From sequence record PP886230.1: a stretch of 64,000 nucleotides of DNA; one strand, 5' to 3'. Numbering within the stretch: position 1 is the stretch's first letter; the number at the start of each line of letters is the position of its first letter. Positions 1-64,000 of the stretch are shown here, in pieces. The translations under genes were made by a program, and so were the position numbers. The notes under the pieces were generated by a model that worked only from the letters and a program-made list of their open reading frames with translations, was not told the DNA's origin and ran no database searches.

Positions 1-848
1 CAAAGATACATACATTCTTAAATCAATGTCACCTATTACCGTGTTTCCTGAGAACCTATTCACTACATTAAAGAATAGTTTTATTGTGGGTGATATTGAT
101 GCATTCAAGTATTTTGACAAAGGTGCAAAACATTTTGAAATTCAATGTCTTAGTACTGCACTATGTGAACTCATTAAAATTTACATAAAAGAGTATTTGG
201 GTATTGACAATGTACGTGTACCAGAGTATACTTTTTCTATTGAATTCGATTGTGAATCAATCAAAGAGTTTGGAATTCTTTTCAATAAACAAATAGAACT
301 TGCAATTCAAAACGAAATCAAGTACTATACTACTAACATTTAATCAGAGGAAATTATCATGCAAATTATCATTCTTATCGTTGGCATCATGCTGGGTGTT
401 TACGGTCACTCCTGGATGAACGAGAAGTTTCCTAATACGCGTCCTGAGTATTGCAGTACTAATGTATTCCAGAATGGTGAGAAACCAAAGGAAAGCATTG
501 GTAAAAAGCTGGATAAAGTACTTGATGTGATCAATGAATAAGGGCCATAAAATGTTTAAACCGAATTCCAATGTTGGTAAGAAAGTTCAATTACTTGAAG
601 ATGTATCCACCATGAGTGGAATTTTCCCAAGAGGTCACATCATGACTATTATTGCCGAAACATCCCGTGGGTGGGATTTGGAAGATGCTGATGGTAATCG
701 CATCCTTGAGGCTGGATTCTATGGTCATCGTGAATATAAAATCGTTGATTAAGGATACAACATGACTTTAGAGATTGTCTTTGGTATTGTTAGCTTAGTC
801 GTCTGTGTGGGTTGGTTTGGGTATCTGATGATTTTTGGTGATTAATAC

Positions 849-876
849 TTGACATAAGATATCAGTACTGTATAAT
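849..876 (+). promoter_or_regulatory. sigma70 promoter TTGACA-16-TATAAT with AGTACT in the spacer
   Basis: Exact consensus hexamers at 849-854 and 871-876. The same design recurs at 5163, 15492 and 44259 and many times after 45.5 kb. Confidence 0.85.
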
Positions 877-1627
877 GTTTATATCAAACGAAATCCACTT
901 TAACAAATGATAGGAAATATTATGTCTTTTTCTAAAGAAGAACGTGACCTTATTAAAAAAGCAATTTGGTTTTATGCTAATGAAGGGAAGTGCGATGAAG
1001 AAAAAGCACGTGAACTGTGTAATATTCTTGAGAAGAAACAAGAACTGAAAGTGTATCGTATCCGTGATTTGGATGAAGGAGATCGTATTGTCCTAGCTGA
1101 AACAAAAGAAGAAGCAGAACAAATCTTCACTGATAAAAACGAAAATCCACATTGGATGGAAGAAGTCTGTGATGTTAAAAAAGGTACTTATATCGATTGA
1201 CAGTACTGAATAATAGCAGTATTATGTTTTATATAAAAGGGAATGCAGTGAAAGGAAAGACAGCATAATCGTACTCGTCACTGCGTTCCCGCCCTTTTAA
1301 ATTAAATGAGGAATTAACTATGTTTCAAACTAACACTCAAGGTTTTGTAATCATCGATTTGAATCAAAACAGCGGTCATTGGATGAAACCTACTGACGCA
1401 TGTATGCAGTTTGATTTCTTAGGTTACAAAATTAGTGTAAGTACTGGTGCTTCTGTACTGAGAGGTGGTTGTATCGTTGAACATCTGGTAACTGATCCAG
1501 AAGGTCGTGAGTATGAAATCGCAGGTTCAGTACAAGATGCCATTATGTTTGTATGTCAGCGTGAAATGAATGGTTCGAATTCAAATGCACTGACTCATGC
1601 TCTTTCTCAAGAAGTGGAGGTTCGTTA

Positions 1628-1873
1628 ATGAAATACATTGTAGCAGTACTCGTCGCATTTCTACTCACTGCATGTGATGCTTCTACCAAAGAACGTACAA
1701 GTGATTTTGTTCTACCTGCTGAATTAAAAGAAGCAGGGTGTAAGATTTATCGTATGCAACAAGATGGTGCTGGTGCGACTTTATACACTGTGTACTGTCC
1801 TAATGCAAATACAAGTACTGGATACACTAGCGGTAAAACACGAATCAACACTTCCGTAATTCATGGAGAATAA
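1628..1873 (+). CDS. Small lipoprotein
   Basis: Signal peptide with lipobox LTAC. Confidence 0.7.
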   Translation: MKYIVAVLVAFLLTACDASTKERTSDFVLPAELKEAGCKIYRMQQDGAGATLYTVYCPNANTSTGYTSGKTRINTSVIHGE

Positions 1874-2240
1874 CAATGAGCCTTGATACAACACGTGCAG
1901 CAGATTTATTAACTCGTCTGAATGATGAAGAATATCTTGCTGAGATAAAGTACAAGCTTGACAAACTTGTTCGAAGTGCTGAAGTAATTGAAGTTGAAGG
2001 TCACTTACCGATGGATCAATACCATAGGTTCAAGGAAGATATGGTTTATTATCCTAATGAAATTTGGATTGAGTGGCAACATTGGACTAACAAAACTCTT
2101 CGCATTGAAGGGTATTGTGTGAAGTATGAAAGTTCACCTGGTGATGTTACAAAAACTCTATCAATTTGGTGTACAAAAACAAATGAACTCGTTGAGGTGA
2201 ATTTGAATTATATGAATGGATTCCGTTGGGGTGATGTTAA

Positions 2241-43413: not shown

Positions 43414-43428
43414 TTAATAGAGAATACT

Positions 43429-44030: not shown

Positions 44031-44050
44031 TTTTACCCTTCGGGGTAAAA
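44031..44050. terminator. Perfect hairpin TTTTACCC-TTCG-GGGTAAAA
   Basis: 8-bp stem with cUUCGg loop; role uncertain. Confidence 0.5.
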
Positions 44051-45232: not shown

Positions 45233-45410
45233 TATACGCTTTTTCAGGATCAAGTCAATACCTAAAAACAAAATAATTGAAAATAATTTAACGCGTTTAA
45301 ACGGCCCGTAACGCCCTGGATTGTTGGGAGTGGTGCAAATGTATAGCTTAGGTGTATTAATGCGTTAGAATGCGTCTGAGGCCGTTTTATGGGGTGTAGT
45401 AGTGATTTGG

Positions 45411-45503
45411 TTGATTCAGTACTGAATAATAGTACTCCTATATAGAAAGATAGTTCCCCTGGATTGATTCAGTACTGAATAATAGTACTCCTATATAGAA
45501 AGA
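45411..45503 (+). repeat. Exact 40-bp direct repeat (45411-45450, 45464-45503), each copy with two AGTACT
   Basis: TTGATTCAGTACTGAATAATAGTACTCCTATATAGAAAGA x2. Confidence 0.9.
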
Positions 45504-47054
45504 AAACTATTTTAAAAGTATTTGTAGAAAGTACTTGCACCGTACTGATAAAAGCGTATAATGTTTTACATCGAGAGCGGGAACACTTCCCGCTACACTT
45601 TAAGAGAGATTAATACGATGGCAACTCAAATCACCAAAATTATTGCTAACCTGGTTAACTTCCGCGACGAGATGAAAGATCTTCCGGCGGCGACGGTTAA
45701 AACTCACATTGACGCATACCGCGAACTGATTAAAATGCTGCCGCTTAAGCGTGAACAATACGCCGCTACCGTGATGCTTGATGCGATGATCCATAAGATG
45801 ATCGCCAGTGATTTGACGATGGTTTATCAGTATATGGGCGAAAATTTCGCGGTGTGTAGTAAGCCAGTACCAGGGATGGCAACAACTGAGGAATTGCACG
45901 GCTTAAACTTAAAACAAGATGCATGGGATAATATGCCTCGTTTCCTGGTATGGGCTGACAGTGGCAAAATTTACAAATAAGTTTAATAAAGTACTTGCAA
46001 ACTATGTTTAATGGCGTATAATGTTTTACATCAGGTGGGGAATAGTTCCCCACTATATAAGAGGATTAAAAAAAAATGGCTAAATCAAAAATGTTCTTAG
46101 GTCACAAAAACAAAACTCATTGGAATGTAAGCCTGTGGATTAATAACGATGAGGGATTGTATCGGTTGGCCCTGGACTTTATTGCCGCCAATACTAATCG
46201 CAATGATGCGGCCCGTCATATGATGTTATTTTTAGAACAGACTGGACAAGATAAAACACCGGACGGATTCAAATATAGCACTACTGCGATCCGTGCGGCG
46301 ATGGTTGGAATGTAATAGAATAGAATTTATTTAAAGTACTATTGCACGGGGATAGTACTTTATAATAGTGTTTTATTCATACACCAACGATAAGGGCAAC
46401 AGCATGAATATTAAGTATTTTGCGACGCGTGAACAAGCTCGGATCGCCGCTCGCCAGGACGGGGCAACGTTTAAAGATATGGGCGTACAATCGGAACGTG
46501 GTAAACGTTGGGCCATTGTAAAGCGTAGTACCGCCAGATCATTACAGTACTGGTTAGCGGCCTTAAAAAGTCCCGATAGTGTATCGCGTCGAGTGGTAGA
46601 AATAAAGCTCGACCGAAAGGGCAACCGCGTGACCGTGTACCGTACTAAAAAGATTGCAGTACTTGAATAAAAAGTACTTGCAAACTATGTTTAAAGGCGT
46701 ATAATGTTTTACATCGAGAGCGGGAACTCTTCCCGCCTATAACCTGGAGTAATAAAAATGACTAATATGTATATGACTGAAGTTAAAACCGTAAAAGATA
46801 CTACCACGAATAAAACTACTTACTTACAGCGGATCTGTGGTGTATGGCAACGTATCAGCAAATCAAAGTACTTTAAATTAACATCATATGCAAACCGTTC
46901 TGATTCATTCAGTACTGAAATAAAAGGTAATAAAGTACACCAATACGGCACTTATTATTATTACAGCCTGGACGCGATTGCAGTATAAGCAGTTTACAAA
47001 TCTTTACAATTGCCGGTATTGACTTATTTTGTCAGTACTGGCATAATGTATTCA

Positions 47055-47160
47055 TTGGCAGATAAGCCGTAGCCCATAGGGTGCGGGAGTGTATCTATAG
47101 AAAAATTAGTTTAGTATAGTTACAATTGTGCACCCGGTGGGTTAGCTGTTGTCATGGGGT
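47055..47160. ncRNA. sRNA family B copies 4 (+) and 5 (-), convergent
   Basis: Cores at 47071-47084 and 47130-47143; promoters at 47019-47047 (+) and 47163-47191 (-). Confidence 0.6.
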
Positions 47161-47272
47161 ATATTATGCCAGTACTTGATAATGCTGTCAATACTTTTTT
47201 TTACTATCCAGTACAGAAAACTATTTTTAAAAAGTACTTGCAAACTATGTTTAAAGGCGTATAATGTTTTAC

Positions 47273-47348
47273 ATCAGGACGGGGGAACGAAATAAGTAAC
47301 TTCCCGTTAAGTAGCCCAGGAGTAAGGCACACGAAAAACTCCCCTGAT
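47273..47348 (+). ncRNA. Structured RNA family A copy 1
   Basis: ATCAGG/CCTGAT closing stem, two inner stems, no ORF, followed directly by the next promoter. Confidence 0.6.
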
Positions 47349-47416
47349 AAAATAGTTTGACAAATGTTTTTAAAAGCGTATAATACTTACATCAACTACT
47401 GAATGAGGGTTACAAA

Positions 47417-48028
47417 ATGAAAACTATCACTACTACTACTTTCGTTATGGATTTTTCTGAATTGAACGCAGAACAAAAAACGTCAGCTATCGAACTGGTT
47501 CGGGAACGTGAAAAAAACTCAAACGACAATTATTTTTCTGAAAGTGAAATTGAATACTATAAAGAAACAGTACTACCGGAATATGGCATTAATGACGCTG
47601 AAATACAATTCAGTGGCTTTTGGTCCCAGGGTGACGGTGCATCAATCAGTACTGACCACGTTGACGCAGTGAAGTTTTTACGCAAGGTAAGAGCATTAAC
47701 TAAGTATCGCTCAATCCGTCACTTGCTGAATGAAGATGATTTGGCGATGAGTGTAAAGCGTTCGCACTCCCACTACTCGCATGAGAATACTGTAAGCGGG
47801 TACATTGAATCGGCTTACACTGATTTAACCGCAAAACAAGAAACGTTAGTTAATGAGCTTGAGGAACTACTCACTGATACTATTCGTGAATTGTCCCGCA
47901 AGTTGTACCGTGATTTAGAGAATGCATATGAGGATCAATTCACTACTGAAAACATTACGGCACTGATTGAGGGTAACGAGTATCAATTCAATGTTATTGA
48001 TGGCGTAGTGGAATCAATCGAATATTAA
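47417..48028 (+). CDS. Conserved phage/plasmid protein with FSGFWSQGDGA motif
   Basis: Family recalled as often auto-labelled antitoxin of a TA stability system; the label is unverified. Confidence 0.55.
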   Translation: MKTITTTTFVMDFSELNAEQKTSAIELVREREKNSNDNYFSESEIEYYKETVLPEYGINDAEIQFSGFWSQGDGASISTDHVDAVKFLRKVRALTKYRSIRHLLNEDDLAMSVKRSHSHYSHENTVSGYIESAYTDLTAKQETLVNELEELLTDTIRELSRKLYRDLENAYEDQFTTENITALIEGNEYQFNVIDGVVESIEY

Positions 48029-48647
48029 TTTAAAAAGTACTTGCAAACTAAGTTTAAAAGCGTATAATACTTTATATCGAGAGCGGGAATAGTTCCCGCT
48101 ACTAATGAGGAATACTACAAATGAATACTTTTACCTTCGCTCAATTGAACGCCCTGGATGTATTGTCTGATGCTTTGCGGGATGCAACTGAAAGCGGTTT
48201 ATTTGACAATGTTGACATTCACCCTGATGTAATTAATAATTTTTGTGATGCTATCGCAGAAGTACTGGAAGATCTAAAAAAATAATAGAAAGTACTTGCA
48301 ATTAGTTTTTAGTACTGTATAATGTTTTACATAGAGGGGAGAAATGGTTCTCCCTGGTAATGAGGAAAATACAATGGCTAATATCACTACTCTTTCCCAA
48401 CTGGAAGCACTGGTTAAATCTATGCGGGAACATGCCGACAATATCGGCGTAAAAGATCCAGCCGTTTGCTTCTGCGACGAATTGAATGATGATACCCTGG
48501 TAATAGCAGAAGTCCAGGACGTTTCTAACTATTCCTCGCGTTACACTGGCGGCGTAGCAAATAAAGGTGACTTCTGTTTATACCTTACCAAATAACAACG
48601 CGGGGAGATAATAACTCCCCGTTACTTTTTCAGTACTGAATCATTTA

Positions 48648-48700
48648 ATAGACGGATCTCGGCACCCGGTGGGTTAGTGACTGTTTCGTCTTGATGTAGT
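48648..48700 (-). ncRNA. sRNA family B copy 6
   Basis: TTGACA-17-CATAAT on the minus strand; AGACG...AACCC-ACC-GGGTGC...CGTCT. Confidence 0.6.
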
Positions 48701-49718
48701 AATTATGCCAGTACTGGATGCACTTGTCAACAACTATTTTTCAAATACTTTTTATTAAAATACTTGCTAATAGTTTTTAAACGCGTATAATGTTTTGCAT
48801 AGGGGGAGCGGTTCCCCTGGTAACTAAGGAATAATAAAATGCTTGAACAAATCAAATCAACGTCTGCGAATGTAACGGGAACGGTTGTACACTTTACTAG
48901 TGATGAATCGCGGGGCGTTCCCTATTGTGCTGTACATGTAAACACTGATGGCAACTACTGGTTTACGGTTTACGGATCATATTCATTTGGACGACCAGGG
49001 CATCAAAAAATTCTGGATAAAGTACAGCCAACGGGTAAAAATATCACGGCTGAAATGTTTTATAAAAAATCATAAAGTACTTGATAATAGTTTTTAGTAC
49101 TGTATAATATTTTACATCGCAAGGGGGTAATGGTTCCCCCTGGTAACTAAGGATAATCAAATGAAAGTTGCATTCATCGCCCTGGCTTTATCTGTTTCCT
49201 CTTTTGCTGTTAATGCGTCGTTAGATGTAAGTAGTGAAAAATTCATTCAGTGCACTGTAGCAATGACAGATGAAAGTACTGGCGAGATTGTATTAAAGGA
49301 TCTGGAGATTCAGCCGGAAGCATTTAAAAACGGCCCGTTCCATGAAGAAGACGAAAACGGTAGCACAACAATTTATTATGATGCCAGTACTAAACGCGGG
49401 TCGGTCACTGTTATGGATACTGAGAAAGTAACTCATACTGGCGTTATTAATTGCCGTTGATAGATACTACGGGGTAACATCATGACTAAGCGAATTGTTT
49501 TACTTAACGAAAGCAGTACTACACAACTACTTAACGCCGTGCATTATGATATTGAAACGAGCGTTAATCTTATCAGTACTGTAGTACTGTTGGACACTGG
49601 AAAGGTCGCCAATGATAAAGCGATTGCAGGTATACTAACGGATCTTGAGCCTGGTAGCAGTGCACCAATAACGTTAAATGGTAAAGTGTTTAATATTTTA
49701 CTCACTGATTAAGTACAT

Positions 49719-49742
49719 AGCCCACCTGGTGGGCTTTTTTGT
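49719..49742 (+). terminator. Terminator TAGCCCAC-loop-GTGGGCT-T tract (also ~50447 and ~54609)
   Basis: Hairpin plus U tract after a stop codon. Confidence 0.8.
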
Positions 49743-49829
49743 TTTTGTAGTATCGTAGTACTGAGATACTTTGAAAATAGTTTTAAAAAAGTAGTTGACA
49801 TTACCGCAGAAAAGCGTAGAATGTATTAC

Positions 49830-49902
49830 ATCAAGACGGGGAGCACTAAGTAGACCGCCAGTAAGTCGAACGAAAAACTGGACACGTCGAGAAAACTTTG
49901 AT
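49830..49902 (+). ncRNA. Structured RNA family A copy 3, leader of the H-NS-like gene
   Basis: Shares TAAGTAG and stem-AAG-N4-ACGAAAA-stem with covarying stem. Confidence 0.5.
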
Positions 49903-49943
49903 ACACTAATAAACGTAAACTAAACTTTAATTGAGGATTTATA

Positions 49944-50426
49944 ATGGCTAATGTAAAATCATTCATCAAAGCACTGGTAGCAAATGAAACTAACGTCGCG
50001 GCTGAGATCCTGGCTGAACTGGATAACGATACCATGAAAGCGGTACGCAATAATTTTAACATCGCGTACAGTACTGCGAAAGAACTACAAGCAAATAAAG
50101 CGGCAGAAATTGAAGCGGCAAAGGCGGCCCGTGAAGCAGAACTACAAGCAACAATCGAAAGTATCCAGGCGGCGGTGTCTGGATTGGATCTGGAAGTGGT
50201 TGTGGAAATGGCACATAAAGCCCTGGCGGTTAAGTATGGTGAAGATAAGCCAGAATCTAAACCCAAAAAATGGATTCAGGAACGCGTAGCGGTAGTACTG
50301 GACAACGGGGAAGAATATCTGATTCCGGTGCGTGGTAACTGTATTGCGGTAGTACTGGACGCTATCAAAGAAAGCGGTATGACTCGCGAGGAATGGATCG
50401 AAGCTCATCGCAAAGTTGAAGCATAA
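49944..50426 (+). CDS. H-NS/StpA-like nucleoid protein with degenerate DNA-binding motif
   Basis: Coiled-coil N-terminus and basic linker. C-term VVLDNGEEYLIPVRGNCIAVVLDAIKESGMTREEW aligns by eye with H-NS [35 protein letters not shown]. Confidence 0.7.
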   Translation: MANVKSFIKALVANETNVAAEILAELDNDTMKAVRNNFNIAYSTAKELQANKAAEIEAAKAAREAELQATIESIQAAVSGLDLEVVVEMAHKALAVKYGEDKPESKPKKWIQERVAVVLDNGEEYLIPVRGNCIAVVLDAIKESGMTREEWIEAHRKVEA

Positions 50427-50710
50427 CAATTAAAGTACTGAATCACTAGCCCACTGTATAAGTGGGCTTTTTTGTGTTTATCGTTTACCAGGCCACCAGC
50501 ACCGCCTAGAAACGATTCTAACGCATTAAACGGATTATCTGATGCATTGCCCTAGCTGGTGGCGTTAAGGCTGTAAGAACGCGATTGAGAGCGTTTAAAG
50601 TATTTTGCAAAAAGTAATAAAAAGTACTTGAACGATTAAGAGATTAGCGTATAATGTTTTACATCGAGAGGGGGAAACGGTTCTCCTTCCAAATCAAAGG
50701 AATCAAAACA

Positions 50711-53700
50711 ATGGCTATTATCATTACTCGCGTATCTGGTACTACTGGCAACGAACAAGTAGTTGCAGTCATTACGAACAAGGCAGGTGCGGAATTGCAA
50801 AATGCAATGAATACCTGGGCCGTTAATGAGTTCGGTCAGTGGGCAAGTGTAGCATACATTGAAACCTATCAAGTGCCGTCGATTAGTTTAACTGATTTGG
50901 GCGTTGAGCGTATCCTTTGCCTTGATGAATTAAATTAAAAAAGTACTTGCAAAGTAAATCGAATAAAGTATAATACATTACATCAAGGGGAGAAATGGTT
51001 CTCCCCACTACAAGGAAACTAAAATGGCTATCATTACTAAAATCAAAGTTAGTAAATCACTGGTTAAACTTGAAGAAGTGAAAGAAGGTTATAAAGTATC
51101 TTGGTGCGGTATGTATCGGACGTTCGCAGATATAGATGATGCGATCAATTATTACACTGACACGGTTAAAAACTTTGTTCGTGCTGATGTGGTTATGGCA
51201 GTGGCAACATATAAAGCATCAAAAGAAAGTAAGTAAAAATATTATCACAGTACTATTGACATAGTTTGATAGTACTGGCATAATAACTTTTATCAAGACA
51301 ACTAAGAGGAAATTAAAATGGCTAACATCAATACTATAGCAGCACAAAATATCAACCTGTCTTCTGTTGAAGTTGTACATATTGCCGCTCGGCGTTGGTT
51401 CCAGGCTTCATATGGTAACACTTATTTCTCTTTAAGTGTAGACGTAGAAATTGATGGTAATTTTATTGAAGTAGTAAACGTGCCGTTCCAATATGGATAC
51501 GGGGATCATTTTGACACTGTAGCAATGGAAGAATTTAGCAAGGTTATTAATATGGAAGGTAAAGAGTTTTTACGCGGTTCTTATCTTTCCCGTTTTTGCC
51601 GTGATAATAATATCACTGTTTATAGTTCTGTTAGTGATGTTAAACGCAAAAAAGATCTTTAATTAGCTTTACTTTATGCAGATACTTTGATATAGTGTCT
51701 GCATAGGGGAAAGAAATTAAATTAACTTAAGAGGATAGTATAATGAAAAATATCAGTACTTTAATCGATGCAGGTACTCATGTTCGTCGGTCTATGGTTG
51801 CAACCAGTACTACAAAACAAGTAGCGAGCGGTTATCTTGTATTTGTGCACGATGGTAAACTCCTGGAACGTTCAATCAATTTTGATGTTAAAAACAATTG
51901 CCGTTTTATTATCTTTAAGCGTGAGCAATATAAAATTGATTTACCAGCAAAGCCCATTAGTGGGGCGTACAACGTGCAATCATTGTTTGAACGTCAACCA
52001 TACACCTATTAATCAAAACATCGTTAGCGGTCGATTCAGGCCGCTTATATTGGGGATTATACCATGAACGTTAATCAAGTACTGAATGAGATCGAAAGCA
52101 TCATTAAACCGATGAAGCGTACTGATGCTATGTTAACACCGGAAGAATGCCGCCTTTATGAGCGTTACAGCGTCGAACAAGTCCAGGCAATGGCTATGGC
52201 TACCCCAGCCGTTAAACCGCCTGAGAATGCGTTACAGGACGTTACAGGGGATTATATCATCAATCCAGTACTAGGGAAGATGGCTGCAATCACCGAAGAT
52301 CAACAAGACTACTTAAGCCAGTACTTAAAAGGTTAATTAATATGCTTACTGTACAGGATAAGATCGACATCTTAAAGGTTAATATGTATGTGATTGATGC
52401 AGAACCTGGTAAAGTATTTGCATACGATGATAGTACTGTAAGCGATTTCTACTATAGCCAGGCCGTGGGGGATCTTTCTGTACAGTCGGTTATTGAAAAC
52501 GTAGTTAATGCAGCGTATGAGCATTTACTTTCAAATAGTACTTGCAATTAGTTTTTAAACGCGTATAATGTTTTACATCGAGAGCGGGAATAGTTCCCGC
52601 CTCACTTTTAAGGAATATGAAATGAAAGCATCAAAAAAGAGTACTAACAAGAAAGCACGTTCAACCTTAGATGGGGTATTCCCTTTACGTTTCGTTGATG
52701 AAGTGGTTTCCTACCCGCCTGGCCTTACTCCTGAGATGGTAGAAAGTTTGCGTAAATCTAAAAAATAGTACTTGCAATTAGTTTTTAGTACTGTATAATG
52801 TTTTACATGAAGGGGAGAAATGATTCTCCCCAATAACAGGAGAAACAAAATGAAACAATACAACGCTCGGTTTGATGTTACTATCGGTAACGGCAAAGGT
52901 CAATTCTCTTTCAGTACTCGCCGCAGTTATACAGAAAACTTCCTGCGTAATTGTGCATTGACCGCCGCTCAAATTAAACATTATTTTCAGGCTAAAAAAT
53001 GAGATCATTAGCTTATTACAGTTCGGCCCTGGTCGGTGCATTGATCGCGGCGTTGTTAGTAACCTATCTATTCTTTATGGTGATTTAAATGAATCCTAAC
53101 GGTATAATTTACAGTACTCCTAAAACGAAAGCAGACAAGGTAAACGCTAAAAAAGCGAAAGTAAAGGAGTACATCAAACAAGGAATGACACGAAAGGCGG
53201 CGATTCTAAAAGCTAAAAATAAATGAAAAAGTGGTTGACTTCGGTCAGCCATTTTGCTATTATATATTCATTGAGAGATAGCTCACTAGCCCACAGGGTG
53301 CAGGAGTGTATCTATTGTATAATGTTTGAGTACTGAAAACTATTTTAAAGTATTTGATAAAAAGTACTTGCAAACTATCTCAATAAGCGTATAATGTTTT
53401 ACATCGCAAGGGGAAACGGTTTCCCCTAGTAATAAGGAAACGAATCATGACTATCTCAATTGCTCAATCTAACTTTGAAAATGAAATCATCGCCCAGGCA
53501 CTGCGTTTAAATGATGGTCGGGCCGAAATCAATTACGGTTTCAATTCAGGCGGTTGTGAAAAATATCAGTACTTTGTAACGGCTGATGGCGGTGTACTGG
53601 GCATCAATACAGTTATTGTAAACATACAGAAAATTAATTTCAATGATCCAGACGATAGCCAGTTTTACATCACTGGCGTAGACGTGAACTATGAGGATGA

Positions 53701-54905
53701 CTCACTAACTGATGACCACACTGGCGAGAAGTTAGAAAGTGCATACGGTGAAGATGATTATCAGTCCGGTCCAGAAGATTTCGAATAATATTAAAAAATA
53801 GTTTGACAATAGATTATAGTACTGTATAATAGTTTACATCAAGGGGAGAAAAACTTCTCCCCACTAACAGAGAGAGAAAACAAAATGGCTAATATCCGGT
53901 CGAAATTAAAAAATGCAAAACAAGTTTTATTTTCAGATCATGAATACTTTAATAAAGATATTACAGGAGTTACAAGTATCAAGGAAGTAAAAGAAAAAAC
54001 CGGCGTTTTGTGTGATGTGCGATTAGTTGGGACATTTGGGAATAACGTGCTATATCGCTGTGGTGATTACAATTTTACACTGACTATCATTAACTAAAAA
54101 TATTATCACAGTACTATTGACATAGTTTGATAGTACTGACATAATAACTTTTATCAACTACACTACTAAGGAATTAAAAATGGCTATCATCGCAAAAACT
54201 GAAATCATCGGCCTGGATTCTATCATCATGACGTTTGAAGATCAAAAAGGTATGTATGTGGTTTCCTATGGTGATTATGTTCGGGAGTATGAAACGGTAG
54301 ACGAAGCCTTTGAAAGTTACATTCGCCAGGTGAATAAAGCATACGACGACTACCGCTAAAATATATTACCAGTACTATTAAAGATATTGACAACGTTTGA
54401 TAGTACTGTATAATAAGTTTTATAAACAGTAGTTAACTTAACCTAAGAGAGAAATAAAATGATCGCACTGGATTCATTCATCGACGCAGTACTGGCAAAA
54501 ACTGGCGAGGATCTGACCGCAGAACAATACGCGATGATCGAACAATGTCAACAGGACGGTAAATCGGTGAAAGATACTGTTAAGATTATCCGCAAGATGT
54601 AAGATTATAGCCCACTGGTTAACGCTGGTGGGCTTTAATTCATTACCCTATACAATGCCAGTACTAAACCGTTTATCTCGTTAGAATGCGTTACAGGACG
54701 TTTACCAATGATTAGCATGAAATCAGTACAAAAACAAATAGAAACATTATCAAAAATTAAACGTAAACAGTACTCCTTAGAATATACAATCAATGGTAAC
54801 TATCATCTAATGAAAGAAAATAATTTTATAGTCATTGATGAATCATTGCAAATCATTAGTATAGTACTGAAAGCATTAATCAATGACAGAAAAAAATTAA
54901 AATAA
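50711..54905 (+). other. Early small ORFs 50711-50938, 51024-51236, 51318-51662, 51743-52012, 52064-52336, 52342-52551, 52622-52768, 52850-53002, 53447-53788, 53885-54097, 54180-54359, 54708-54905
   Basis: Promoter cassettes and RBS; no confident function. Confidence 0.7.
53270..53315 (+). ncRNA. sRNA family B copy 7
   Basis: AGATA-GCTC...AGCCC-ACA-GGGTGC...GAGT-G-TATCT after a terminator-promoter. Confidence 0.6.
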
Positions 54906-54944
54906 ACTATTGACAATATCATCCAGCACTGGCATAATACTTAC

Positions 54945-54992
54945 ACCAAGACGAGAACGTCACTAACCCATAGGGTGCACAAATGTAACTGT
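54945..54992 (+). ncRNA. sRNA family B copy 8
   Basis: TTGACA-17-CATAAT at 54910; core AACCC-ATA-GGGTGC. Confidence 0.55.
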
Positions 54993-55236
54993 ATAATATT
55001 GATCAAAAAATGATCTGATCAATACTTGATCAATTTGCGTAAAGTAGTATAATTCTATGCAGTTGGTTAGACGAAAGGTTATGATTAGTAGTGCAAGTGT
55101 ATAAAAATTTTCATGGTGTATCGTTCCGCACATATGGGGATGAATATGTGGTATCATGTGGATTGGAAAAAGTAAGAACAAGTAATATTATTGTCGCATT
55201 ACAGTACTATAGTATTTTTATAATGAGGTTAAAATA

Positions 55237-55494
55237 ATGGCTGTAGGATTCGCGAAAGATGGGGCCGAGCAAGACGAGATTAACGCAGTGATTCAGGCCG
55301 CCGTTAACCACGCTAGAAAGCAAATTAACGCACAAATAGAATCACTGATACATTGCCTCGACTGCGGCGATATAATCCCTGAGAAACGACGCCAGGCCGT
55401 TAAGGGATGTAAGTACTGCATAACTTGCCAGGAGGATCATGATAGTACTTTTAAACGTCCCCCGCGTAATTGTTGGCATAGATCTATGAGATAA
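55237..55494 (+). CDS. TraR/DksA-family C4 zinc-finger protein (YbiI-like)
   Basis: G[FW]AxD N-terminus; CxxCGxxIPExRRxAVxGCxxCxxCQ. Confidence 0.9.
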   Translation: MAVGFAKDGAEQDEINAVIQAAVNHARKQINAQIESLIHCLDCGDIIPEKRRQAVKGCKYCITCQEDHDSTFKRPPRNCWHRSMR

Positions 55495-55557
55495 AAAGTA
55501 TTGACAGTACTGAAAGATAGTGTATAATGTTTTATATCTTAACTGAGGATAGTAATC

Positions 55558-55914
55558 ATGGGAATACAACATATCACGCGTACTACTGACAATGGCGAGA
55601 TCACTGGCTATCAAGTACAGGGCAAAGTAGCACAATTGCAGTACTGGTTTGTGAAACGTGGAATCATTGCACCGGATCTTGATTATGACCGTGTAGCGTT
55701 TATTGATTCTCTTTATGTTGATCCTGATAGTCGGGGCAATGGTGAAGGTAACGAATTAATGAATGCCTTTATTGATGCCGCCGATGATTCAGATTGTATC
55801 ATTTTAGAATGCGATACGGGAGAAGATAACGCCTTTAATCTTAAAGAATGGTACGAAGGTTTCGGATTCGAGGTACTGATCGATAGTGAATATCCTATCA
55901 TGATTTTATCATAG
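55558..55914 (+). CDS. GNAT-family acetyltransferase
   Basis: IDSLYVDPDSRGNGEGNELM (motif A) and WYEGFGF (motif B). Confidence 0.85.
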   Translation: MGIQHITRTTDNGEITGYQVQGKVAQLQYWFVKRGIIAPDLDYDRVAFIDSLYVDPDSRGNGEGNELMNAFIDAADDSDCIILECDTGEDNAFNLKEWYEGFGFEVLIDSEYPIMILS

Positions 55915-57307
55915 TACTTGCATTTAGTTTTCAGTACTGTTATAGTACTTGCATCAAGGGGAAACATCTTCCCCTACTAAGAGGAAATAAAAATGGAAAA
56001 CTTATCAAGTATTTTAGTACAAGATGATTTCGGTAATCCTGGAAGTGCTATCATTGTTCGGGGTAATAAAGCAACGTTTGTTATTGCTGGTGGACCAGTA
56101 CAGCGTAGCATTAAAAATAATGCTGTTACCATTAATAATGTACGCTATCGCTTAGATAAAGAATTGATTCATAAACTGTAATATTAATTTAATAGAGGAT
56201 AACAATAAATGTACATTCATACTACTATCACAAAGGAAGTCCGTTGCCAGTTCGAAAGTATTCCGGGCGTATGTTTCATCACTGGTACGTTTTCCCCTGG
56301 TGATCGTGATAATCCAGTACTGTTACAATTACGCCATCCATCATGGGATAAAGCATTTGATCTACCGTTGAATGAATTCGCAACTACTGCTGAAAAGTAC
56401 ATTAAAAATATTCGCGAGAATGATCGACTATTCATTAATGCTTTTAGTGATTCCGCGTTAAGCGAGATCCACGGCGTATTGGTTGCAATCATGGAATCAA
56501 TGCAGAAAACTAAATTCAAACAAGGTGAATAAAAACTATTGACAATGCAACCCAGTACTGTATAATAGTTTACATGAAGGGGAGAAATGATTCTCCCCAC
56601 TGAGAGGAAAGAAAAATGCAAGGTCAACTAATCGTTCGTAAATGGTCTGATACTAACGAAAAACCGTGGGATGTACAATACATCGGACCGGATGGGGTAT
56701 CACGTTATCAGCCTGGCGTAACGCATAGTACTGAGCAATATGCCGCCGCTCACCGCGAACGCCTGTTAGAATCCATGAAACAGGGATTCTGTGAAAAATT
56801 CATTCAAGATCATTGGCTGAAAGATTAATAGAAGGAGTACAGCTTATGCAAATGAATCCGATGATTATTGTTTTAGCTGTACTTATGATCATTCATGCAA
56901 TTGTAGAAGTATTAACGCAATCAGGAGTAATAAAATGATTCAAGTAGAATTATCAGTACTGAAAGATCTGTTTTATCGGTTAGGTACTACTGGAGAGTAT
57001 CCTAAAAGTGATACCGCAAAACTTTTTGTATCACTCGACTTATGGCAACGCGAACAATTAGTAATGTCCTGGCGTAAAGGTAAAGCAGATCGCGAGGTGA
57101 AAGCATGAAAGAATTCTTATTCGAAGTAGTGTTTCAAGGTGTCGGTAGTAACCAACTGATTCGCTCAAGTGGTTACAATGTTAACCAGGCATGGAATAAC
57201 ATTAAACAAATGTACCCGAACGCTATCACCTATCGCAACCCGAAAGAAGTTTAAAAATATTTGAAAAAGGGATTGACTCCGGTCAGTCCCTTTGCTATTA
57301 TATACGC

Positions 57308-57350
57308 ATAGAAACAATTCAGCCCACCGGGTGCATAAATGTATCTATTA
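57308..57350 (+). ncRNA. sRNA family B copy 9
   Basis: ATAGA...AGCCC-ACC-GGGTGC...TCTAT. Confidence 0.6.
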
Positions 57351-57426
57351 TATGCTGGTGGCTAGTACTGAAAACTATTTTTAAAAAGTACTTGCATTGT
57401 ATTTAGAATCAAGTATAATGTTTTAC

Positions 57427-57499
57427 ATCAGGACGGGGAACGAAACAAGTAACCCCGTTAAGTAGTCCAGGAGTAAGACATACGAAAACCTCCCCTGAT
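57427..57499 (+). ncRNA. Structured RNA family A copy 2
   Basis: Near-copy of 47273-47348; substitutions keep the stems paired. Confidence 0.6.
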
Positions 57500-59659
57500 A
57501 AAATAGTTTGACAATAGAAATTAAACGAGTATAATACTTACATCAACCACTGATAAGGAAACATAAAATGCGGATTCTACTGACAGCTAACGAAATCGAA
57601 CAAGTACTGACTACTAACCTGGAAGACTGGAAACGTGAAGCAGATATCCAGGCGGTTCAATGGTTAAATGATAAGTTAACGCCGGATGACTTAAGCAAGA
57701 TTGTAGATCCTCAATTCTACGAAGATATCCACGACACCGCGTTAAGCGTCGAGGATGTACTAGATAAGCACTTTATTGATACTGATTTGCAGGTTTACGG
57801 TCGTAAAAACTTTATCACTATTCACGACATTTACAATAATTAAGTATTGACAAAGTATCTTAGTACTGTATAATAGTTTACATCAAGCGAGGGGAATGGT
57901 TCCCCTCCTAACTAAAAGAGAGAAATAAAAATGGCTAAGTGCACTATCTGCAAGAAAGAAATAGTATTAGTTCCAAGTGCCCGTGAACGTGCCGCTCGGT
58001 TCGGTGGCAAAGCGTCAGACTATACAAAAATGTTTACTACCCATACAGCTTGCCAGGTAGCAAAACGTTCACAAGAAAGCGTAGAATTAATGCGTAAACT
58101 TTCCAAAAAATAAGTATTGACAAAGTATCTTAGTACTGTATAATAGTTTACATCAAGTGAGGGGAAACGGTTCCCCTCCTAACAAAGAGAGAGAAATAAA
58201 AATGGCTATGATCCTTGCCCAGAAAGTAGAATTGAAAATTGTAACCTCCTTTGACATTAACGTTAATCGGTGGACTGATTCACACGGCAATACTTACCAC
58301 TCTTGCTACGTGTCTGCGTTAATTGGCGACCGCTGGGAAGACCTGGGACACGAAACCTTTACATACGGTTACGGTACACAAGGCGAATACACGGGCTTGG
58401 AGATCATTAAAGAAACCGTTATAGGTTTCAACCCGAAAGAAAAAGTTATTCACCGCATCGAGGAAGAGATCAACAAAGAAATAACAGTTCGCTACCACGA
58501 TGTAAAACGTAAGAAAGACATGTAATAGAATCCATTTAAAGTACTATTTGACATTGCCCAGATAGTACTTTATAATAGACTCTAACTTGTAGTACTAACT
58601 TAACTAATAGGATGTATACCATGATTACTAAATTCTACGCTACCCGTGAAGCTGCCCGTATTGTTGCACGCGAGGAAGGCGAAACATTTAAAGACATGGG
58701 CAAAGATGCACCGAAAGGTCAACGCTGGGCCGTACAGTTCAAAGAGATCTCTGATATTGTGAATTCACCGGAGCCAGTACTAACAGCAGCAGAACTAAAA
58801 CGAGCGGATTTACTGGCGTCAATACTTGATGCACAAGATGAGTTTATCGCTGATTCTGATATCAAAGTACAGACAAACCACACCGCTTGGACTCACGCGG
58901 ATCACCTGGCAAACCTTAAGCGTCCAAGTGAACTGATTCGCAACCAGAAAGAGATCCGACACGACCGTAAGGGTAATCGTGTAACAGTATACAGTAAACG
59001 CCGCCAGGTTATCTAATAACTTGCAGTACTAACAACACGGCGGGATCAGTTCCCGCCTTTTTTATAGGACAAACAAAATGATTAAGGTTCAACTATATAA
59101 AGATAACATCTTACGGGTACACTATAAAGCACCTCAGAGAATCATCACAAAGGCCGTACAGCTTGCTAATGAGTTTATTAATGGTAACCTATTACCAAGG
59201 AAGTTAAGCAACGGGAAACTGCGTGTAATCGATGTGGACACTAACAACAGAATAGTAATAGAGAACACAGGAAAAATAAACCTATATGAACACCAACAAT
59301 ATAATAAGAAAATAAAACTAATATCACGTTGACAGTACTCAAATGTTTTAGTACTATATGTACATACCAACACGGGGGAAACAAAATGATTACTTTAGAA
59401 AAACGTATCAAAGAAACTACATCGCTGGTGGAACTGTTAACAGTACTCAAATGTAAAACAACACCATTCAGCACGCCGGACTTTATTAATATGGTTGATG
59501 TTAATGGTCGCTATCGTATCACGGTCGAACAAGGAGCGGCGAAAGTATTCAGTACTAAAAACACGAAGGAAGTGATCCACGCCGTTAATGTTAAAAAAGT
59601 AGTTGCCATTGATAGTAAAGTACTGTAAGATAGTTACATTAACTCAAGGAGAACATGCA

Positions 59660-60244
59660 ATGCGTAATTATACTAAATTCATCCGTACACTGTCAGAAAT
59701 GGAAACCAACAAAGAGATCCTTTCAGCTTGTCGGTTAGCTGGCCTGGAGATCATCGGTGCTGGTTCTTCCCGTATAGTATTCGCTTTAAATGATCGGTTA
59801 GTGATTAAGGTCGCGAATTGTGATGCGGGTGTAGAACAAAATGAAACTGAATGTAAGGTATGGAATTTTTTAGACTATGACCGCCCTCAGTTGAAACAGT
59901 ACTTTGCAAAGGTGCATATGCATTTATGCGATCCTGATAATATGTTTATCGTTATGGATCGGTTGAGTACTGCAAGCAAAGGCAGCGTAAAGCACGTTAA
60001 CGCGTGCAACGAATTAAAGTATAATATTAAACGTAATGCCATTGAACGCCAGCACCGCTTTGCTGATGCACTACAACACGTTGATGATACATTATCAACA
60101 CTAACGATAAGAGATATCAGAAAACAGAATATCGGCCAGGATCGTAATGGACTTATTAAAGTACTTGATTACGGTTTAACCCGCAATATCTGGAATCAGT
60201 ACTATAAAAAGCGTGATGTAGAAGCAAGTAAGGTAACACGATAA
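59660..60244 (+). CDS. Ser/Thr protein kinase-like protein
   Basis: IGAGSSRIV, VIKVA, DIRKQN, LDYG; GGAG RBS. Confidence 0.8.
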   Translation: MRNYTKFIRTLSEMETNKEILSACRLAGLEIIGAGSSRIVFALNDRLVIKVANCDAGVEQNETECKVWNFLDYDRPQLKQYFAKVHMHLCDPDNMFIVMDRLSTASKGSVKHVNACNELKYNIKRNAIERQHRFADALQHVDDTLSTLTIRDIRKQNIGQDRNGLIKVLDYGLTRNIWNQYYKKRDVEASKVTR

Positions 60245-60297
60245 AAAAAGATTAAAAAAGGGATTGACTCCGGTCAGTCCCTTTGCTATTATATATT

Positions 60298-60345
60298 CAT
60301 TGAGAGATAACTCACTGACCCATAGGGTGCGGAAGTGTATCTATT
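60298..60345 (+). ncRNA. sRNA family B copy 10
   Basis: AGATA...GACCC-ATA-GGGTGC...TATCT. Confidence 0.6.
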
Positions 60346-62557
60346 ATATAAGTATTCAGTACTGAAAACTATTTTTAAAAAGTACTTGCATTGTACTTAG
60401 AATCAAGTATAATGTTTTATATCGAGAGGGGAAATGGTTCTCCCTCAAAGAACAAGGAATAAAATCATGACTACAATGACTTGCATTCACGCTTCAAACC
60501 TGCTTAATGATGCGGCCTTTAATGTTGAAACAGAATATCAATGTTATCGGGATGAAAATAAAAAAGTTTTTGTAGTTGATAATAATGGTTTCCATATTGA
60601 ATTGCAATCCGGCTTCACTGGCGTTGATGGTAAATCAGTATGGGGCGTACAGGATGATAAAGGCACATATCATTTTAAACGTAATTAAGTATTGACAAAG
60701 TATATCAGTACTGTATAATAGTTTACATCAAGGGGAGAATAGTTCTCCCCACACCAATAAAAGGAAACATAATTATGTCTAGCTACTCCGCTACTATGAT
60801 CATTAAAGATATGAACGGTAATCCTACTTCTGCTGGTGGATCATTTGGAAACATTAATTTAGATGGTCGGTTATCCATGCAATCAGCAATCGATGCAGCG
60901 AAAGAAGTTTTTAAGAATGAATGTACTGTTAGTAAGCTGGATTATATGGGATTTGCTATCGAAAAAACTAATCGTTTTGTGGACTACAAAAAACCACTGA
61001 TGATTGATACTAACCTGAAAGCAAACGAAGTGGAGTACTTATTATGACAGTTGAAGAAGTAAAAAAAGTACTGGCAGTACTACGCTATCATAATCATTGT
61101 AAGGTGAAGAATGATCCTGATTATCTTGATTCATCCCTGGAAGAGGATACACTACAAGCAATAAGCCATATGCAAAAAATGCTTAAGCGTATGACCGAAA
61201 AGAACAGGCCAGACTATATCGGAAATAAAATTTAAAAAGTACTTGCATTGTAGTTAGATTAACGTATAATGTTTTACATAGAGCGGGGGAATAGTTCTCC
61301 CGCCAGTCCAGGAGATACACCATGAACACTATCGAAATCACTATCAATGCACACGTATACGACAACGTAGTACTGCAAACTACTATGACCGCTAATGATA
61401 CCAGTACTTTGCGGAATACTGTTATTAGTGCCGTATGTGCCGCTATCGGTGATGTCGCCCTGGAAAATGCAAAACACGTAAACGATGGTTTCACTATGTG
61501 CAAACGTGATAACGCAAAACATATCATCGTGGAAGGTTACGGCGGTGTAGAATTTAATGTTTATATGAAAAAAGTACTTGCATAATAACTAAAACAAAGT
61601 ATAATGTTTTGCATAGGGGGAGATATCCTCCCCCACTAAAAGGAGTACTAAAATGGCTAACTTTGATGAACTGATGCGGGAAGTAGCTAACCTGGCAGAA
61701 GAGAAGAAATCATTCGATTCTATCTATAACACCGCTCATCGTGATTCAGTACTGGCATGTAACCAGGATCAAAAAGATGAACTAATCGCCACCTATCATG
61801 AAGCATGGAAGTACTACCGACAATGGGAGAAAGAAGAAAGCGAGTCTACCATCAACGGCATCAATAATCTAATCTAAAAGTTTTATTTCAGTACTATTGA
61901 CATAGCTTGATAGTACTGATGTAATAACTTTACTAACTACAAGGGGAAACATAATGGAACAGTTCACACAATATCGGGTAAATCCTCAAGCTATGGCCTA
62001 CGTAGAAGACCATAAAACGTTACCAGTACTGCAACCAGTTAAAGGCCATATCTATCGTGCAATGTCGTGGTGTGCGGCCCAGGATGGCTATAAAACCGTA
62101 GCCGTGGGTATGTACTGCGGTAATGGTGAATGGTTTGATCCAAATAATCCGGTAGCCATTGACAGTACTGAAAAAATGAAATGGGCCGACTACATCGAAG
62201 ATATTTCATAAAAACTATTTGACAGTACTAACCAGTAATGTATAATGTTTTACATAGAGCGGGGGAATAGTTCTCCCGCCAATAGTTTGGAGTTAAACAT
62301 TATGTCTATCGCTATCTCCCTGGTTGAAGTACTGAAAGAAGCTAAAGCCAACCAGATCGACGTAAAGATCCAGGAACTACAAAACGGCTTAATCGGCTGT
62401 ACTTGTACCGCTGGTGGAGCGGCAGACTATCGAGAACACGAATCACTCGAATCACTGGTTCGGTATCTTTCCATGATCGTTGATGATTGGAGAATCATCT
62501 AACAAAAAAGAATAAAAAAGGGATTGACTCCGGTCAGTCCCTTTGCTATTATATACG

Positions 62558-62598
62558 CATAGACAAAAACTAGCCCACAGGGTGCATAGGTGTATCCA
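62558..62598 (+). ncRNA. sRNA family B copy 11
   Basis: Core AGCCC-ACA-GGGTGC after the terminator-promoter at 62520. Confidence 0.55.
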
Positions 62599-63595
62599 AA
62601 ATATATAGTTAATAACGGTGAGTAACTATCTGCTGGTGGAACTAAAACTATTAATAAAAAAGTATTGACAAAGTATATCAGTACTGCGATAATGTATCTC
62701 GTAGGGCGGCAATGGTGCGACGGCCCACAAAGTTAGGAGATTCAAAATGACTACTTCAATCGCTATCGTTAAAGCTTTCATCCGTACTAATGTTTCCTCT
62801 GTATTCATCGACGGCCTCGACCGTAACGTAGAATACTCAATCATTATCGCACAAACGGCAAACGGTTCTCGGTACATCCTGAATGATAGTGAAGCAAATC
62901 ACTACTACTTCACTAAAGCCACTGGCTTTAAACGCATCGATGCTGATGTAGTATACGCTAAGATGAATAAGCTGGTAGATAAGATTAACGCTAAAGGTAC
63001 TATAGATTTACAGTACTGGACCGAAACCGATCCAGAGTATGGATCTCACCGCTACCTGAATCCAGGTATCAAAATGTAAAAAGTACTTGCATAGTACTTA
63101 GATTCATGTATAATGTTTTACATAGAGAGGGGGAAATGGTTCTCCCTCCTAAATTAAGGAGTTTTATCATGACCTTCTCAATCAATTCCTTCGCTGACGT
63201 TTTAGTACTGGCCCGGACTTTTGGTAAAGATGCACTGGAGTACGCTGTAAGTAATGGCACTATCCAACCGGAACAGTGCCGCATCATTGGAAACTGCAAA
63301 CGTTGGGCGGTATCCAATACTATTGCACTGGAAAACTTCCACGATGGCAACAATGAATATTCTGTTGATGTAGTATTCGAAGCCGTTGATCTCGGCGGTA
63401 TCTATAATACTAACCTGAATGATGTGCGTATCGTTCGCACGGGGTTCGGTGCTTATGATGTATCTATCCGTGAAGCTATGAACACCGGATACATTAGCAA
63501 GGACTTACTTGCTCACATCATGCAGCTGTGTACGGAACGTAACGAAGCACGTACTATCTTAGGGCTGTAAGCAATACACATCACCAAACATCATA

Positions 63596-63613
63596 GGCCG
63601 CTCTCTAGCGGCC
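63596..63613 (+). terminator. Hairpin GGCCGCT-CTCT-AGCGGCC
   Basis: 7-bp GC stem after the stop of 63169-63570; weak U tract. Confidence 0.55.
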
Positions 63614-64000
63614 TTAACTATATCAGGAGTACATACATATGTTCTATACAGTATACAGCGTTCTAGGCACTATTGCAGGCGTACATGATAACGTCAATGA
63701 TGCTATGCGTACAGTACTGCAACAGGTTCCACTAAAGCCTAAGACCATTAAGCAGATGACAGCACGACTAACCAGGGCGACGGCTGGCGTGGAAGTATGG
63801 CAGGACTATGGGGATACACAGATAATCGTAAGCGTAACGAAGGATTAATGCGTAAAGGGATTTAGTACTGATTCAGAAAAAAGTCAAGGCGTTTTTAAAA
63901 TTATGCGTTAAAAAAATGCATAGGTAATCCCTTGACTTTTTTGAAATAAAAGGGATTGGACTATGGCAAAATGCGTAGGGGGCTAAAGGGCGGGTAACCT

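Follow-up and report, generated by a model that had tools for sequence, protein, structure and literature searches.

HIP1 (GCGATCGC), the highly iterated palindrome of cyanobacteria, is a short palindrome over-represented many-fold in both coding and non-coding DNA, and contains the methylation target GATC. Phages are known to avoid short palindromes, and word frequencies in their genomes can be shaped by DNA-recognising enzymes, as in phage T7, where EcoP15I sites lie in one orientation. Dyad-symmetric sites that overlap the -35 and -10 elements of many early promoters are found in operator sets such as the P1 c1 operators and the SPO1 TF1 sites; to our knowledge, such sets number in the tens. 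Chi (GCTGGTGG) and the uptake sequences (DUS and USS) are asymmetric, orientation-dependent words that are dispersed without phasing and selected for number, not position. HIP1 also contains the known methylation target CGATCG (PMC6604393). Here we describe the palindrome AGTACT in a 64,000-base stretch of DNA (the window), which is identical to the final 64,000 bases of the genome of Escherichia phage vB_EcoM_E9.1 (PP886230.1, 367,851 bp; adding 303,851 to a window position gives the record position). The phage is a jumbo myovirus, an Asteriusvirus within the Rak2/121Q/PBECO4 group. AGTACT, with the 8-mer CAGTACTG as its optimum, is a positively selected, dyad-symmetric recognition sequence present at about 900 copies per genome in enterobacterial Rak2-like jumbo phages.

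A previous reading of the window made from the sequence alone (the sequence-only reading) had counted 14 AGTACT sites in the first 3,000 nt and had claimed a similar density in every block. The recount gave exactly 14, and each 4-kb block of the window holds between 9 and 30 sites. In total, AGTACT occurs 291 times in the window compared to 21.9±4.2 times in dinucleotide-preserving shuffles (highest shuffle 34), and CAGTACTG occurs 63 times compared to 0.7 expected. AGTACT is the sole strongly over-represented 6-bp palindrome in the window, the runner-up being TGTACA at 2.2-fold. The whole non-redundant genome (344 kb) contains 888 sites versus 117 expected, with 12-68 in each 10-kb bin (approximately 3.4 expected) and one site per 220-390 bp of phage DNA; density is at its maximum in the terminal repeat and at its minimum in the structural and replication genes. 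Markov-corrected counting, a check that the sequence-only reading had called for, left the excess standing at orders 1 to 3 (observed/expected ratios in the window of 13.2, 5.9 and 2.6, respectively), and the excess vanishes only at order 4 (1.2), where the 5-mers AGTAC and GTACT stem mostly from the motif itself. By context, 211 window sites are coding (3.75/kb) and 77 are intergenic (9.9/kb). Many of the latter fall in promoters or terminators that are present as duplicates, and one copy of the terminal repeat makes up the final 20.1 kb of the window. The over-representation of AGTACT in the phage genome is confirmed.

This excess is maintained by selection on the DNA. All three reading frames and both gene orientations are in use among the coding sites, and synonymous-codon shuffling within genes gave 64.3±7.3 sites (maximum 85) compared to 212 observed (3.3-fold), even though this null is itself raised by the effect of the motif on codon usage; codon-order shuffling gave 26±5 sites relative to the same 212. 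AGTACT is thus, like an iterated palindrome, over-represented and present in every frame of coding DNA as well as in non-coding DNA beyond what codon usage would give. The motif has bent protein sequences: Ser-Thr dipeptides (169 versus 96 expected) and Val-Leu dipeptides (179 versus 105) are inflated approximately 1.7-fold, the reverse dipeptides Thr-Ser and Leu-Val are at expectation, and 89 of the 169 Ser-Thr pairs are encoded by AGT-ACT, versus 25 expected. Comparison with phage Turkey3 (88.8% identity, 17 kb) showed that 83-92% of sites are kept, versus 56% of all hexamers, and that per-base mismatch is 3.4-5.0% inside sites and 11.4% outside, with sites evolving 2-3 times slower than their surroundings. 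At third codon positions, mismatch is 11.6% in sites and 21.7% outside (p = 0.01). The sequence-only reading had argued for DNA-level selection from the presence of sites in all frames, and, among the outcomes that would speak against it, had named two that can be computed, a loss of the excess after codon and amino-acid correction and a lack of conservation at synonymous positions; the shuffling and Turkey3 results support the argument and go the opposite way on both outcomes. Purifying selection acts on the DNA sites and not on codons or proteins.

The form of the word is symmetric and graded. C precedes AGTACT in 128 of the 291 window sites and G follows it in 136, and the flank logo TTnC-AGTACT-GnAA, in which the outer TTnC...GnAA preference is the weaker part, is the same across every reading frame and intergenic DNA. 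Genome counts of the extended words were 190 versus 3.4 expected for CAGTACTG (56-fold), and 65 and 45, each versus 12.6 expected, for AAGTACTT and TAGTACTA, respectively. The opposite-flank word GAGTACTC is not enriched genome-wide (3 versus 3.4 expected). An estimate that treats the two flanks as independent, based on window flank frequencies and genome counts, predicts approximately 184 copies of CAGTACTG, compared to the 190 observed. The one-off neighbours of AGTACT mostly lie at approximately 0.9-2.2-fold (genome-wide, AGTACA 2.1-fold, TGTACT 1.8-fold, AGTACC 1.8-fold and GGTACT 2.2-fold), with the exception of AGGACT/AGTCCT, which is depleted to approximately 0.45-fold; the deamination neighbours AGTATT (1.14-fold) and AATACT (0.99-fold) are not depleted. 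The site therefore has the dyad symmetry and graded half-site preferences of an operator set, and the modest enrichment of most neighbours suits a landscape of binding energies better than it suits an enzyme with an all-or-none site.

Sites are also placed at fixed positions in promoters. Forty intergenic promoters in the window are strong sigma70-type promoters, and 27 of these have AGTACT within 50 nt upstream of the -10 hexamer, at offsets from that hexamer of -7 (14 promoters), -27 (9), -8 (3) and -17/-18 (3). In the -27 form the site abuts the -35 hexamer (AAGTACTTGCAA), and in the three -17/-18 promoters it is fused to the -35 hexamer (TTGACAGTACT). AAAGTACTTG occurs 17 times in the window, and many of the type B promoters (Table 1) are paralogous copies. 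Both promoter placements described in the sequence-only reading were recovered: AGTACTGTATAAT stands ahead of the -10 hexamer at 864, 5178 and 44274 as it had quoted, with a fourth position corrected from 15508 to 15507, and the site overlapping the -35 hexamer as AAGTACTTGCA is present in promoter contexts. As expected of an operator set, positions relative to the -35 and -10 hexamers are fixed across the promoter set, and the registers -7/-8 and -27/-28 recur in Klebsiella phage OU509535.1, which belongs to another genus. Relative to genes, sites are over-represented at 30-90 nt ahead of start codons and under-represented over the final 30 nt. Terminator-like AGTACT sites number 17, versus 5.9±2.5 in shuffles. 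A family of approximately 11 GCCAGTAC...GTACTGGC terminators lies between the RCC1-like genes at 25808-37609, with one more at 23931-23956, and the CCAGTAC/GTACTGG stems found there agree with the previous observation of AGTACT in the terminator stems of the RCC1 array.

The trait is shared by close relatives. Among IMG/VR loci anchored on the capsid gene, AGTACT is in 3.2-6.4-fold excess in every relative with a capsid protein at least 85% identical, in 2.4-fold excess at 72% capsid identity, and not in excess at 64-69%. Around the capsid gene the excess is 4.9-fold in E9.1, 5.7-fold in Klebsiella phage RaK2 and 6.5-fold in Pectobacterium phage CBB, and the complete genome of the Klebsiella Alcyoneusvirus OU509535.1 contains 945 sites versus 117 expected (8.1-fold), with CAGTACTG at 83-fold. 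In 17.4 kb of codon-aligned, single-copy core genes from three phages (66-71% nucleotide identity), there are 26, 39 and 42 sites, several-fold over the composition-based rate of approximately 0.34 per kb, and 5 of 82 positions are common to all three. Site number is held across the clade while positions turn over, as in an iterated palindrome, and number counts more than position. Pseudomonas phage PA5oct has no AGTACT in 41 kb around its capsid gene, where 14 are expected, an avoidance that may reflect restriction pressure in the Pseudomonas host. A 50-kb sample of E. coli K-12, which is small, contains 3 sites compared to 11.6 expected (0.26-fold), and in this one host sample AGTACT is approximately 40-70 times rarer per kb than in the phage.

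Other words are skewed in these genomes. GCGC is absent from the window (67 expected), from the 344-kb unique genome (289 expected) and from OU509535.1 (224 expected), as well as from RaK2, CBB and close IMG/VR segments. PA5oct and most of the distant relatives have GCGC at its normal frequency, L031 (IMGVR_UViG_3300044959_000303) has only 3 copies versus 25 expected, and the E. coli K-12 sample is GCGC-rich (342 versus 215 expected, 1.6-fold). Total loss of GCGC and the full AGTACT excess are seen together in the clade examined. Distant capsid relatives carry other palindromes in excess: TTCGAA (68 versus 7.1 expected) in L031, which also has TTTCGAAA at 26-fold and TCGA at 4.4-fold, CACGTG in L080 (17 versus 2.6), TGGCCA in L049 (19 versus 3.3) and TTGCAA in L071 (22 versus 5.9). 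Chi is clustered in the terminal repeat (window 44471-62639), with nine copies in + orientation and two in - orientation, compared to approximately 0.06 expected; one of these is part of a hairpin, CCACCAGCacaaGCTGGTGG (window 44471-44490), and Chi is likewise clustered in the early region of Klebsiella phage OU509535.1. The clustering suggests protection of the genome ends from RecBCD. Taken together, the loss of GCGC, the Chi clusters and the AGTACT excess suggest a genome strongly shaped by DNA-recognising machinery.

A dimeric DNA-binding protein is favoured as the reader of AGTACT because the logo is symmetric and graded and the promoter registers are fixed. Our leading proposal, which is held tentatively, is that the sites are bound by such a protein, which both controls early promoters and marks phage DNA. 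The putative reader would be a homodimeric, sequence-specific, double-strand DNA-binding protein, probably encoded by the phage. In the usual promoter geometry, sites located 7-8 nt ahead of the -10 hexamer would span approximately -20 to -14 relative to the transcription start, with others abutting the -35 hexamer, and a dimer bound at an early promoter would compete with RNA polymerase, probably resulting in a timed shut-off or other control of early transcription. The dispersed sites, spaced as they are, could tag the phage DNA as 'self'. Several observations weigh against this proposal. Only approximately 110 of the 888 sites in the whole genome lie in promoter-like contexts, and for the others, about 85% of the total, the marking role is pure conjecture. 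Site spacing shows no helical phasing, and no clustering beyond local density (the sole clear spike, at 20 bp, is due to duplicated two-site promoters), so the sequence offers no sign of cooperative coating. The window yielded no DNA-binding candidate: in a search that was not exhaustive, 50 of its proteins were scanned against Pfam and none had a DNA-binding domain. In the annotation of the genome, a late sigma factor, a DksA-like zinc-finger protein and a Dps-like protein are the few entries labelled as regulators, and neither a transcriptional repressor nor another suitable DNA-binding regulator is listed. Neither source thus supplied the cognate protein expected of an operator set. The reader may instead be a host protein common to Enterobacterales. 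Finally, a symmetric dimer does not explain a 7.7-kb array at record 27196-34904, outside the window, with 41 copies of AGTACA on the + strand, no TGTACT and no AGTACT. A broader idea, prompted by the skewed words described above, is that phage-made factors would read AGTACT-rich, GCGC-free sequence as self versus host for nuclease attack, transcription control or end protection, with no base modification involved; it is rather doubtful.

The AGTACA array suggests strand-specific reading in at least one context, and a serious rival to the dimer is accordingly an enzyme that moves along the DNA and reads the strand-specific word AGTAC(W), of which AGTACT would be the version that works both ways; candidates include a Chi-like attenuator of a helicase-nuclease, a helicase-primase start signal and a non-template-strand signal for RNA polymerase. 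In the array, all 44 copies of AGTAC lie on the + strand (there is no GTACT), in all three frames and in varied contexts, with C and G still favoured at the flanks, and phage TH47 is alike. In the Klebsiella phage, the DNA that immediately follows the early region on its downstream side has a milder bias in the same sense (62:33), the peak of AGTACT density coincides with the Chi cluster in the terminal repeat or early region of both genera, and dispersal without phasing, with number and not position conserved, is as for Chi or uptake sequences. However, beyond this region the enrichment of AGTACA and TGTACT does not exceed that of other one-off variants such as AGTACC and GGTACT, and in the window, where both are approximately 2.3-fold enriched, strand bias is lacking (coding strand 49, template strand 43). 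The flank preferences are symmetric, with G at +1 retained even in the polar array, and fixed promoter registers are not expected of a translocase signal. A neighbouring region (record 19,971-24,751) has the opposite polarity, and counts for less because its sites are largely at homologous codons of a paralog family. There is no GC-skew signal of an origin at the polarity switch; a replication origin near 26 kb was considered there and rejected, as GC skew merely follows transcription, and a promoter and terminator scan of the switch was uninformative. Among 10 proteins encoded in the AGTACA region, none had a DNA-binding domain in Pfam searches. On balance, a moving enzyme is a less likely explanation than the dimer. 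The two regions lie to the right of the left terminal repeat, are both free of AGTACT and GCGC (12.5 kb together), and are AGTACT-free in TH47 as well. These AGTACT-free regions, the array and the undepleted deamination neighbours all speak against a uniform mutational drive, with the reservation that sites could also be missing from a region acquired recently.

Further explanations can be weighed against the same features. The sequence-only reading had suggested that a phage protein or a modification, such as self-marking methylation, reads the site, and had proposed a search for a GTAC or AGTACT methyltransferase. The genome does encode two methyltransferases, a 173-aa Dam-family enzyme (PF05869) and a 286-aa C5 enzyme (PF00145; record 274928-275788), and no AGTACT-specific methyltransferase was found in the window. 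The possibility that the phage modifies its DNA at AGTACT, with the small Dam-family enzyme methylating adenine at N6 as one example, and that the sites are kept dense as an epigenetic self-mark as suspected for HIP1, has these two enzymes and the HIP1-like pattern of a palindrome abundant in all frames and across a clade in its favour. The 173-aa enzyme falls in the family that takes its name from Dam, the typed members of which generally target GATC. Graded flank preferences extending to +/-4 bp are unusual for methyltransferase sites, and there is no deamination-type neighbour signature. The alignment of the C5 enzyme with the catalytic domains of mammalian Dnmt3 proteins is full-length, and the enzyme has homologues in many other coliphages and in Vibrio phages, which may weigh against it as the explanation. 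According to the RaK2 report, RaK2 DNA was cut only by methylation-insensitive enzymes, which favours modification, and bisulfite sequencing gave 5-methylcytosine at CpG, in data not shown there (PMC3622015). AGTACT-specific cytosine methylation is unlikely because the C5 enzyme is Dnmt3-like and probably targets CpG, the 5-methylcytosine of RaK2 is at CpG, and AGTACT contains no CpG. Cytosine self-marking is therefore the part of the previous suggestion that loses ground, and a protein reader stays putative; modification of AGTACT in any form appears improbable. If the reader is instead a host protein, the lead is SlmA of Enterobacterales, with hundreds of phage sites that could block division or recruit a host factor. 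The SlmA binding site is GTGAGTACTCAC, the central six bases of which are identical to AGTACT, and all phages with the trait infect Enterobacterales, whereas the Pseudomonas relative PA5oct lacks sites in the 41 kb covered. The core matches but the outer flanks do not: the phage favours C/G at +/-1 where the SlmA site has G/C, G at -1 being the least favoured base (26 of 291) and GAGTACTC not being enriched, position -3 prefers T and not G (G in 43 of 291), and the full pattern GTNAGTACTNAC occurs once in 344 kb. SlmA was rejected as the match for the site, and exploitation of a host protein of this kind is quite improbable. Methyltransferase-linked short-patch repair is held to skew word frequencies in E. 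coli, and this Vsr-type precedent, together with a high turnover of positions at constant density that is compatible with continuous site creation, could point to a biased mutation or repair process that turns near-cognate words into AGTACT with no selected function. Against this, existing sites evolve at a lower rate than the DNA around them, none of the neighbour words shows the depletion expected of a source of conversion, the two resident GCGC-free regions have no AGTACT, one of them being full of AGTACA, and the gene beside the C5 methyltransferase has no Vsr-like or other Pfam domain; very-short-patch-type conversion was rejected on the missing neighbour depletion and Pfam match, and biased repair in general is very improbable. 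There is next to no probability that the excess is an artefact, be it of base composition, of codon usage or amino-acid content, or of repeat families. Copies do inflate the raw count (the AAAGTACTTG family, the paralogous terminators and the terminal repeat), but shuffles and Markov models to order 3 leave a 2.6-13-fold excess, synonymous shuffling leaves 3.3-fold, and single-copy core genes of three genera are several-fold above composition; composition, codon and amino-acid effects and repeat inflation alone are ruled out by the shuffles and the core genes.

The positions of promoters, terminators and other features of the window are given in Table 1.

Table 1 Features of the window associated with AGTACT (window coordinates)
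Feature	Position	Strand	Basis or remark
Dispersed AGTACT sites, n=291; extended consensus TTnC-AGTACT-GnAA	1..64000		Counts, shuffles, Markov models
Promoter type A, TTGACA-N9-AGTACTG-TATAAT, site 7 nt ahead of -10	864..876	+	Intergenic promoter scan
Further type A promoters	5178, 15507, 44274, 53818, 56554, 57862, 58132, 60707, among others		Intergenic promoter scan
Promoter type B, AAAGTACTTGCAA-N16-TATAAT, site abuts -35 hexamer, offset -27	45990..46025	+	Intergenic promoter scan
Type B copies	46673, 48036, 50623, 50942, 53363, 57387, 60381, 61238, 63082		Many paralogous copies
Promoter type C, two sites 20 bp apart bracketing -35 hexamer and spacer, AGTACTTGCAATTAGTTTTTAGTACTGTATAAT	48291..48323	+	Promoter scan
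Further type C pairs, 20 bp apart	49076/49096, 52767/52787		Promoter scan
Related two-site promoters, 22 bp apart	51249/51271, 54110/54132, 61890/61912		Promoter scan
Intrinsic terminator, stem of two AGTACT copies (AATGCCAGTACTTGAGTACTGGCATT + T-run)	28232..28257	-	Terminator scan
Longest AGTACT-free stretch of window, 1.8 kb, GC 0.30	18928..20735	+	Gap list and annotation
Tandem array, 22 genes: 21 paralogs of ~60 aa each and one 219-aa gene	38829..43620	+	High site density, 30 per 4 kb
Terminal repeat, right copy	43894..64000	+	Early region with many sigma70-type promoters, short early genes and terminators; peak AGTACT density ~65 per 10 kb

The window contains 167 annotated genes, nearly all without an assigned function. 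Its left part (1-24.6 kb) is a block of small + strand genes, followed by the RCC1-like gene array on the - strand (24.6-38.7 kb). The longest AGTACT-free stretch contains an HNH endonuclease gene and an adjacent endonuclease gene (window 18620-20583); these are probably mobile genes of recent arrival, in which sites would not yet have accumulated. In several members of the tandem array of small genes, AGTACT lies 25-30 nt ahead of the stop codon, at E-V-L codons. An AlphaFold model of one member of approximately 60 aa (pLDDT 92) has four helices, and no fold match for it was found in the PDB or BFVD. A second paralog array, of approximately 26 genes of about 70 aa with the motif LGTNYQE, is located at record 20205-25969. 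The direct terminal repeat is 20,107 bp in length (record 1-20107 = 347745-367851), with the head and tail 300-mers recurring at 1/347745 and 19808/367552, and its layout of short early genes recalls the pre-early terminal-repeat region of phage T5. One small early gene in the repeat (window 59078-59332) encodes a ParE-like toxin domain (PF24732, E = 6e-11); the 131-aa gene upstream of it (58621-59016), which has no Pfam match, could be its partner. A repeated module, GGGTTGACTTCGGTCAGCCCTTTTT followed by TATAAT, is present without AGTACT at window 6961, 10204, 10386, 12790, 18359, 20617 and 62547, and forms a hairpin with a T-run, the left arm of which doubles as a -35-like TTGACT; the module may be a fused terminator-promoter unit.

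The palindrome is kept at approximately eight times its expected number over a 350-kb genome, at visible cost to proteins, and the trait is maintained across genera that infect E. coli, Klebsiella and Pectobacterium, as well as in relatives known from metagenomes whose capsid genes are close, which implies that whatever reads it is important. Identification of the reader would explain the timing of early genes in these nucleus-less giant phages, and might explain how their own DNA is discriminated from that of the host. Related jumbo-phage lineages appear to use other palindromes (TTCGAA, TTTCGAAA, CACGTG, TGGCCA, TTGCAA); if they do, the broader self-versus-host reading would extend to a general system with a specificity that changes from lineage to lineage. 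In practice, AGTACT can distinguish resident from recently acquired genes, serve as a handle for pull-down, and flag promoters in genomes where more than 80% of genes lack a known function. No literature was found that joins AGTACT with a jumbo phage: a term search of the CBB, Sharanji and RaK2 papers found no iterated palindrome or such motif, a search for 'highly iterated palindrome' with bacteriophage surfaced only cyanobacterial literature, and CAGTACTG returned primer sequences only. In the literature searched, no prior description of a highly iterated palindrome in a virus was found.

Among known systems, the analogy with HIP1 drawn in the sequence-only reading is fair in pattern, as both words are short palindromes, over-represented many-fold in coding and non-coding DNA, and AGTACT occurs in all reading frames and is abundant clade-wide while its positions turn over. 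In contrast to HIP1, AGTACT belongs to a virus and not a cell, has an AT-rich core of 6-8 bp, is denser, occupies fixed promoter registers, and has no evident cognate methyltransferase. The P1 c1 and SPO1 TF1 operator sets are matched in that dyad-symmetric sites overlap the -35 and -10 elements of many early promoters, as would suit a timer of early transcription, but AGTACT has hundreds more selected sites inside genes. With Chi and the uptake sequences it shares dispersal, lack of phasing and selection on number; inverted pairs placed in terminator stems are also frequent among uptake sequences, and AGTACT is densest where true Chi sites cluster. Those words are asymmetric and orientation-dependent, whereas AGTACT is palindromic and the polar form is confined to the 7.7-kb AGTACA array; we know of no matching translocase or uptake machinery for this phage. 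Restriction avoidance also involves word frequencies shaped by DNA-recognising enzymes, and GCGC is avoided here and the AGTACA array recalls the oriented EcoP15I sites of T7, but AGTACT is enriched 7.6-13-fold and not depleted, and avoidance of one orientation cannot give a 13-fold excess of the other. AGTACT thus resembles HIP1, the operator sets and the Chi and uptake sequences in turn, and is a member of none of them.

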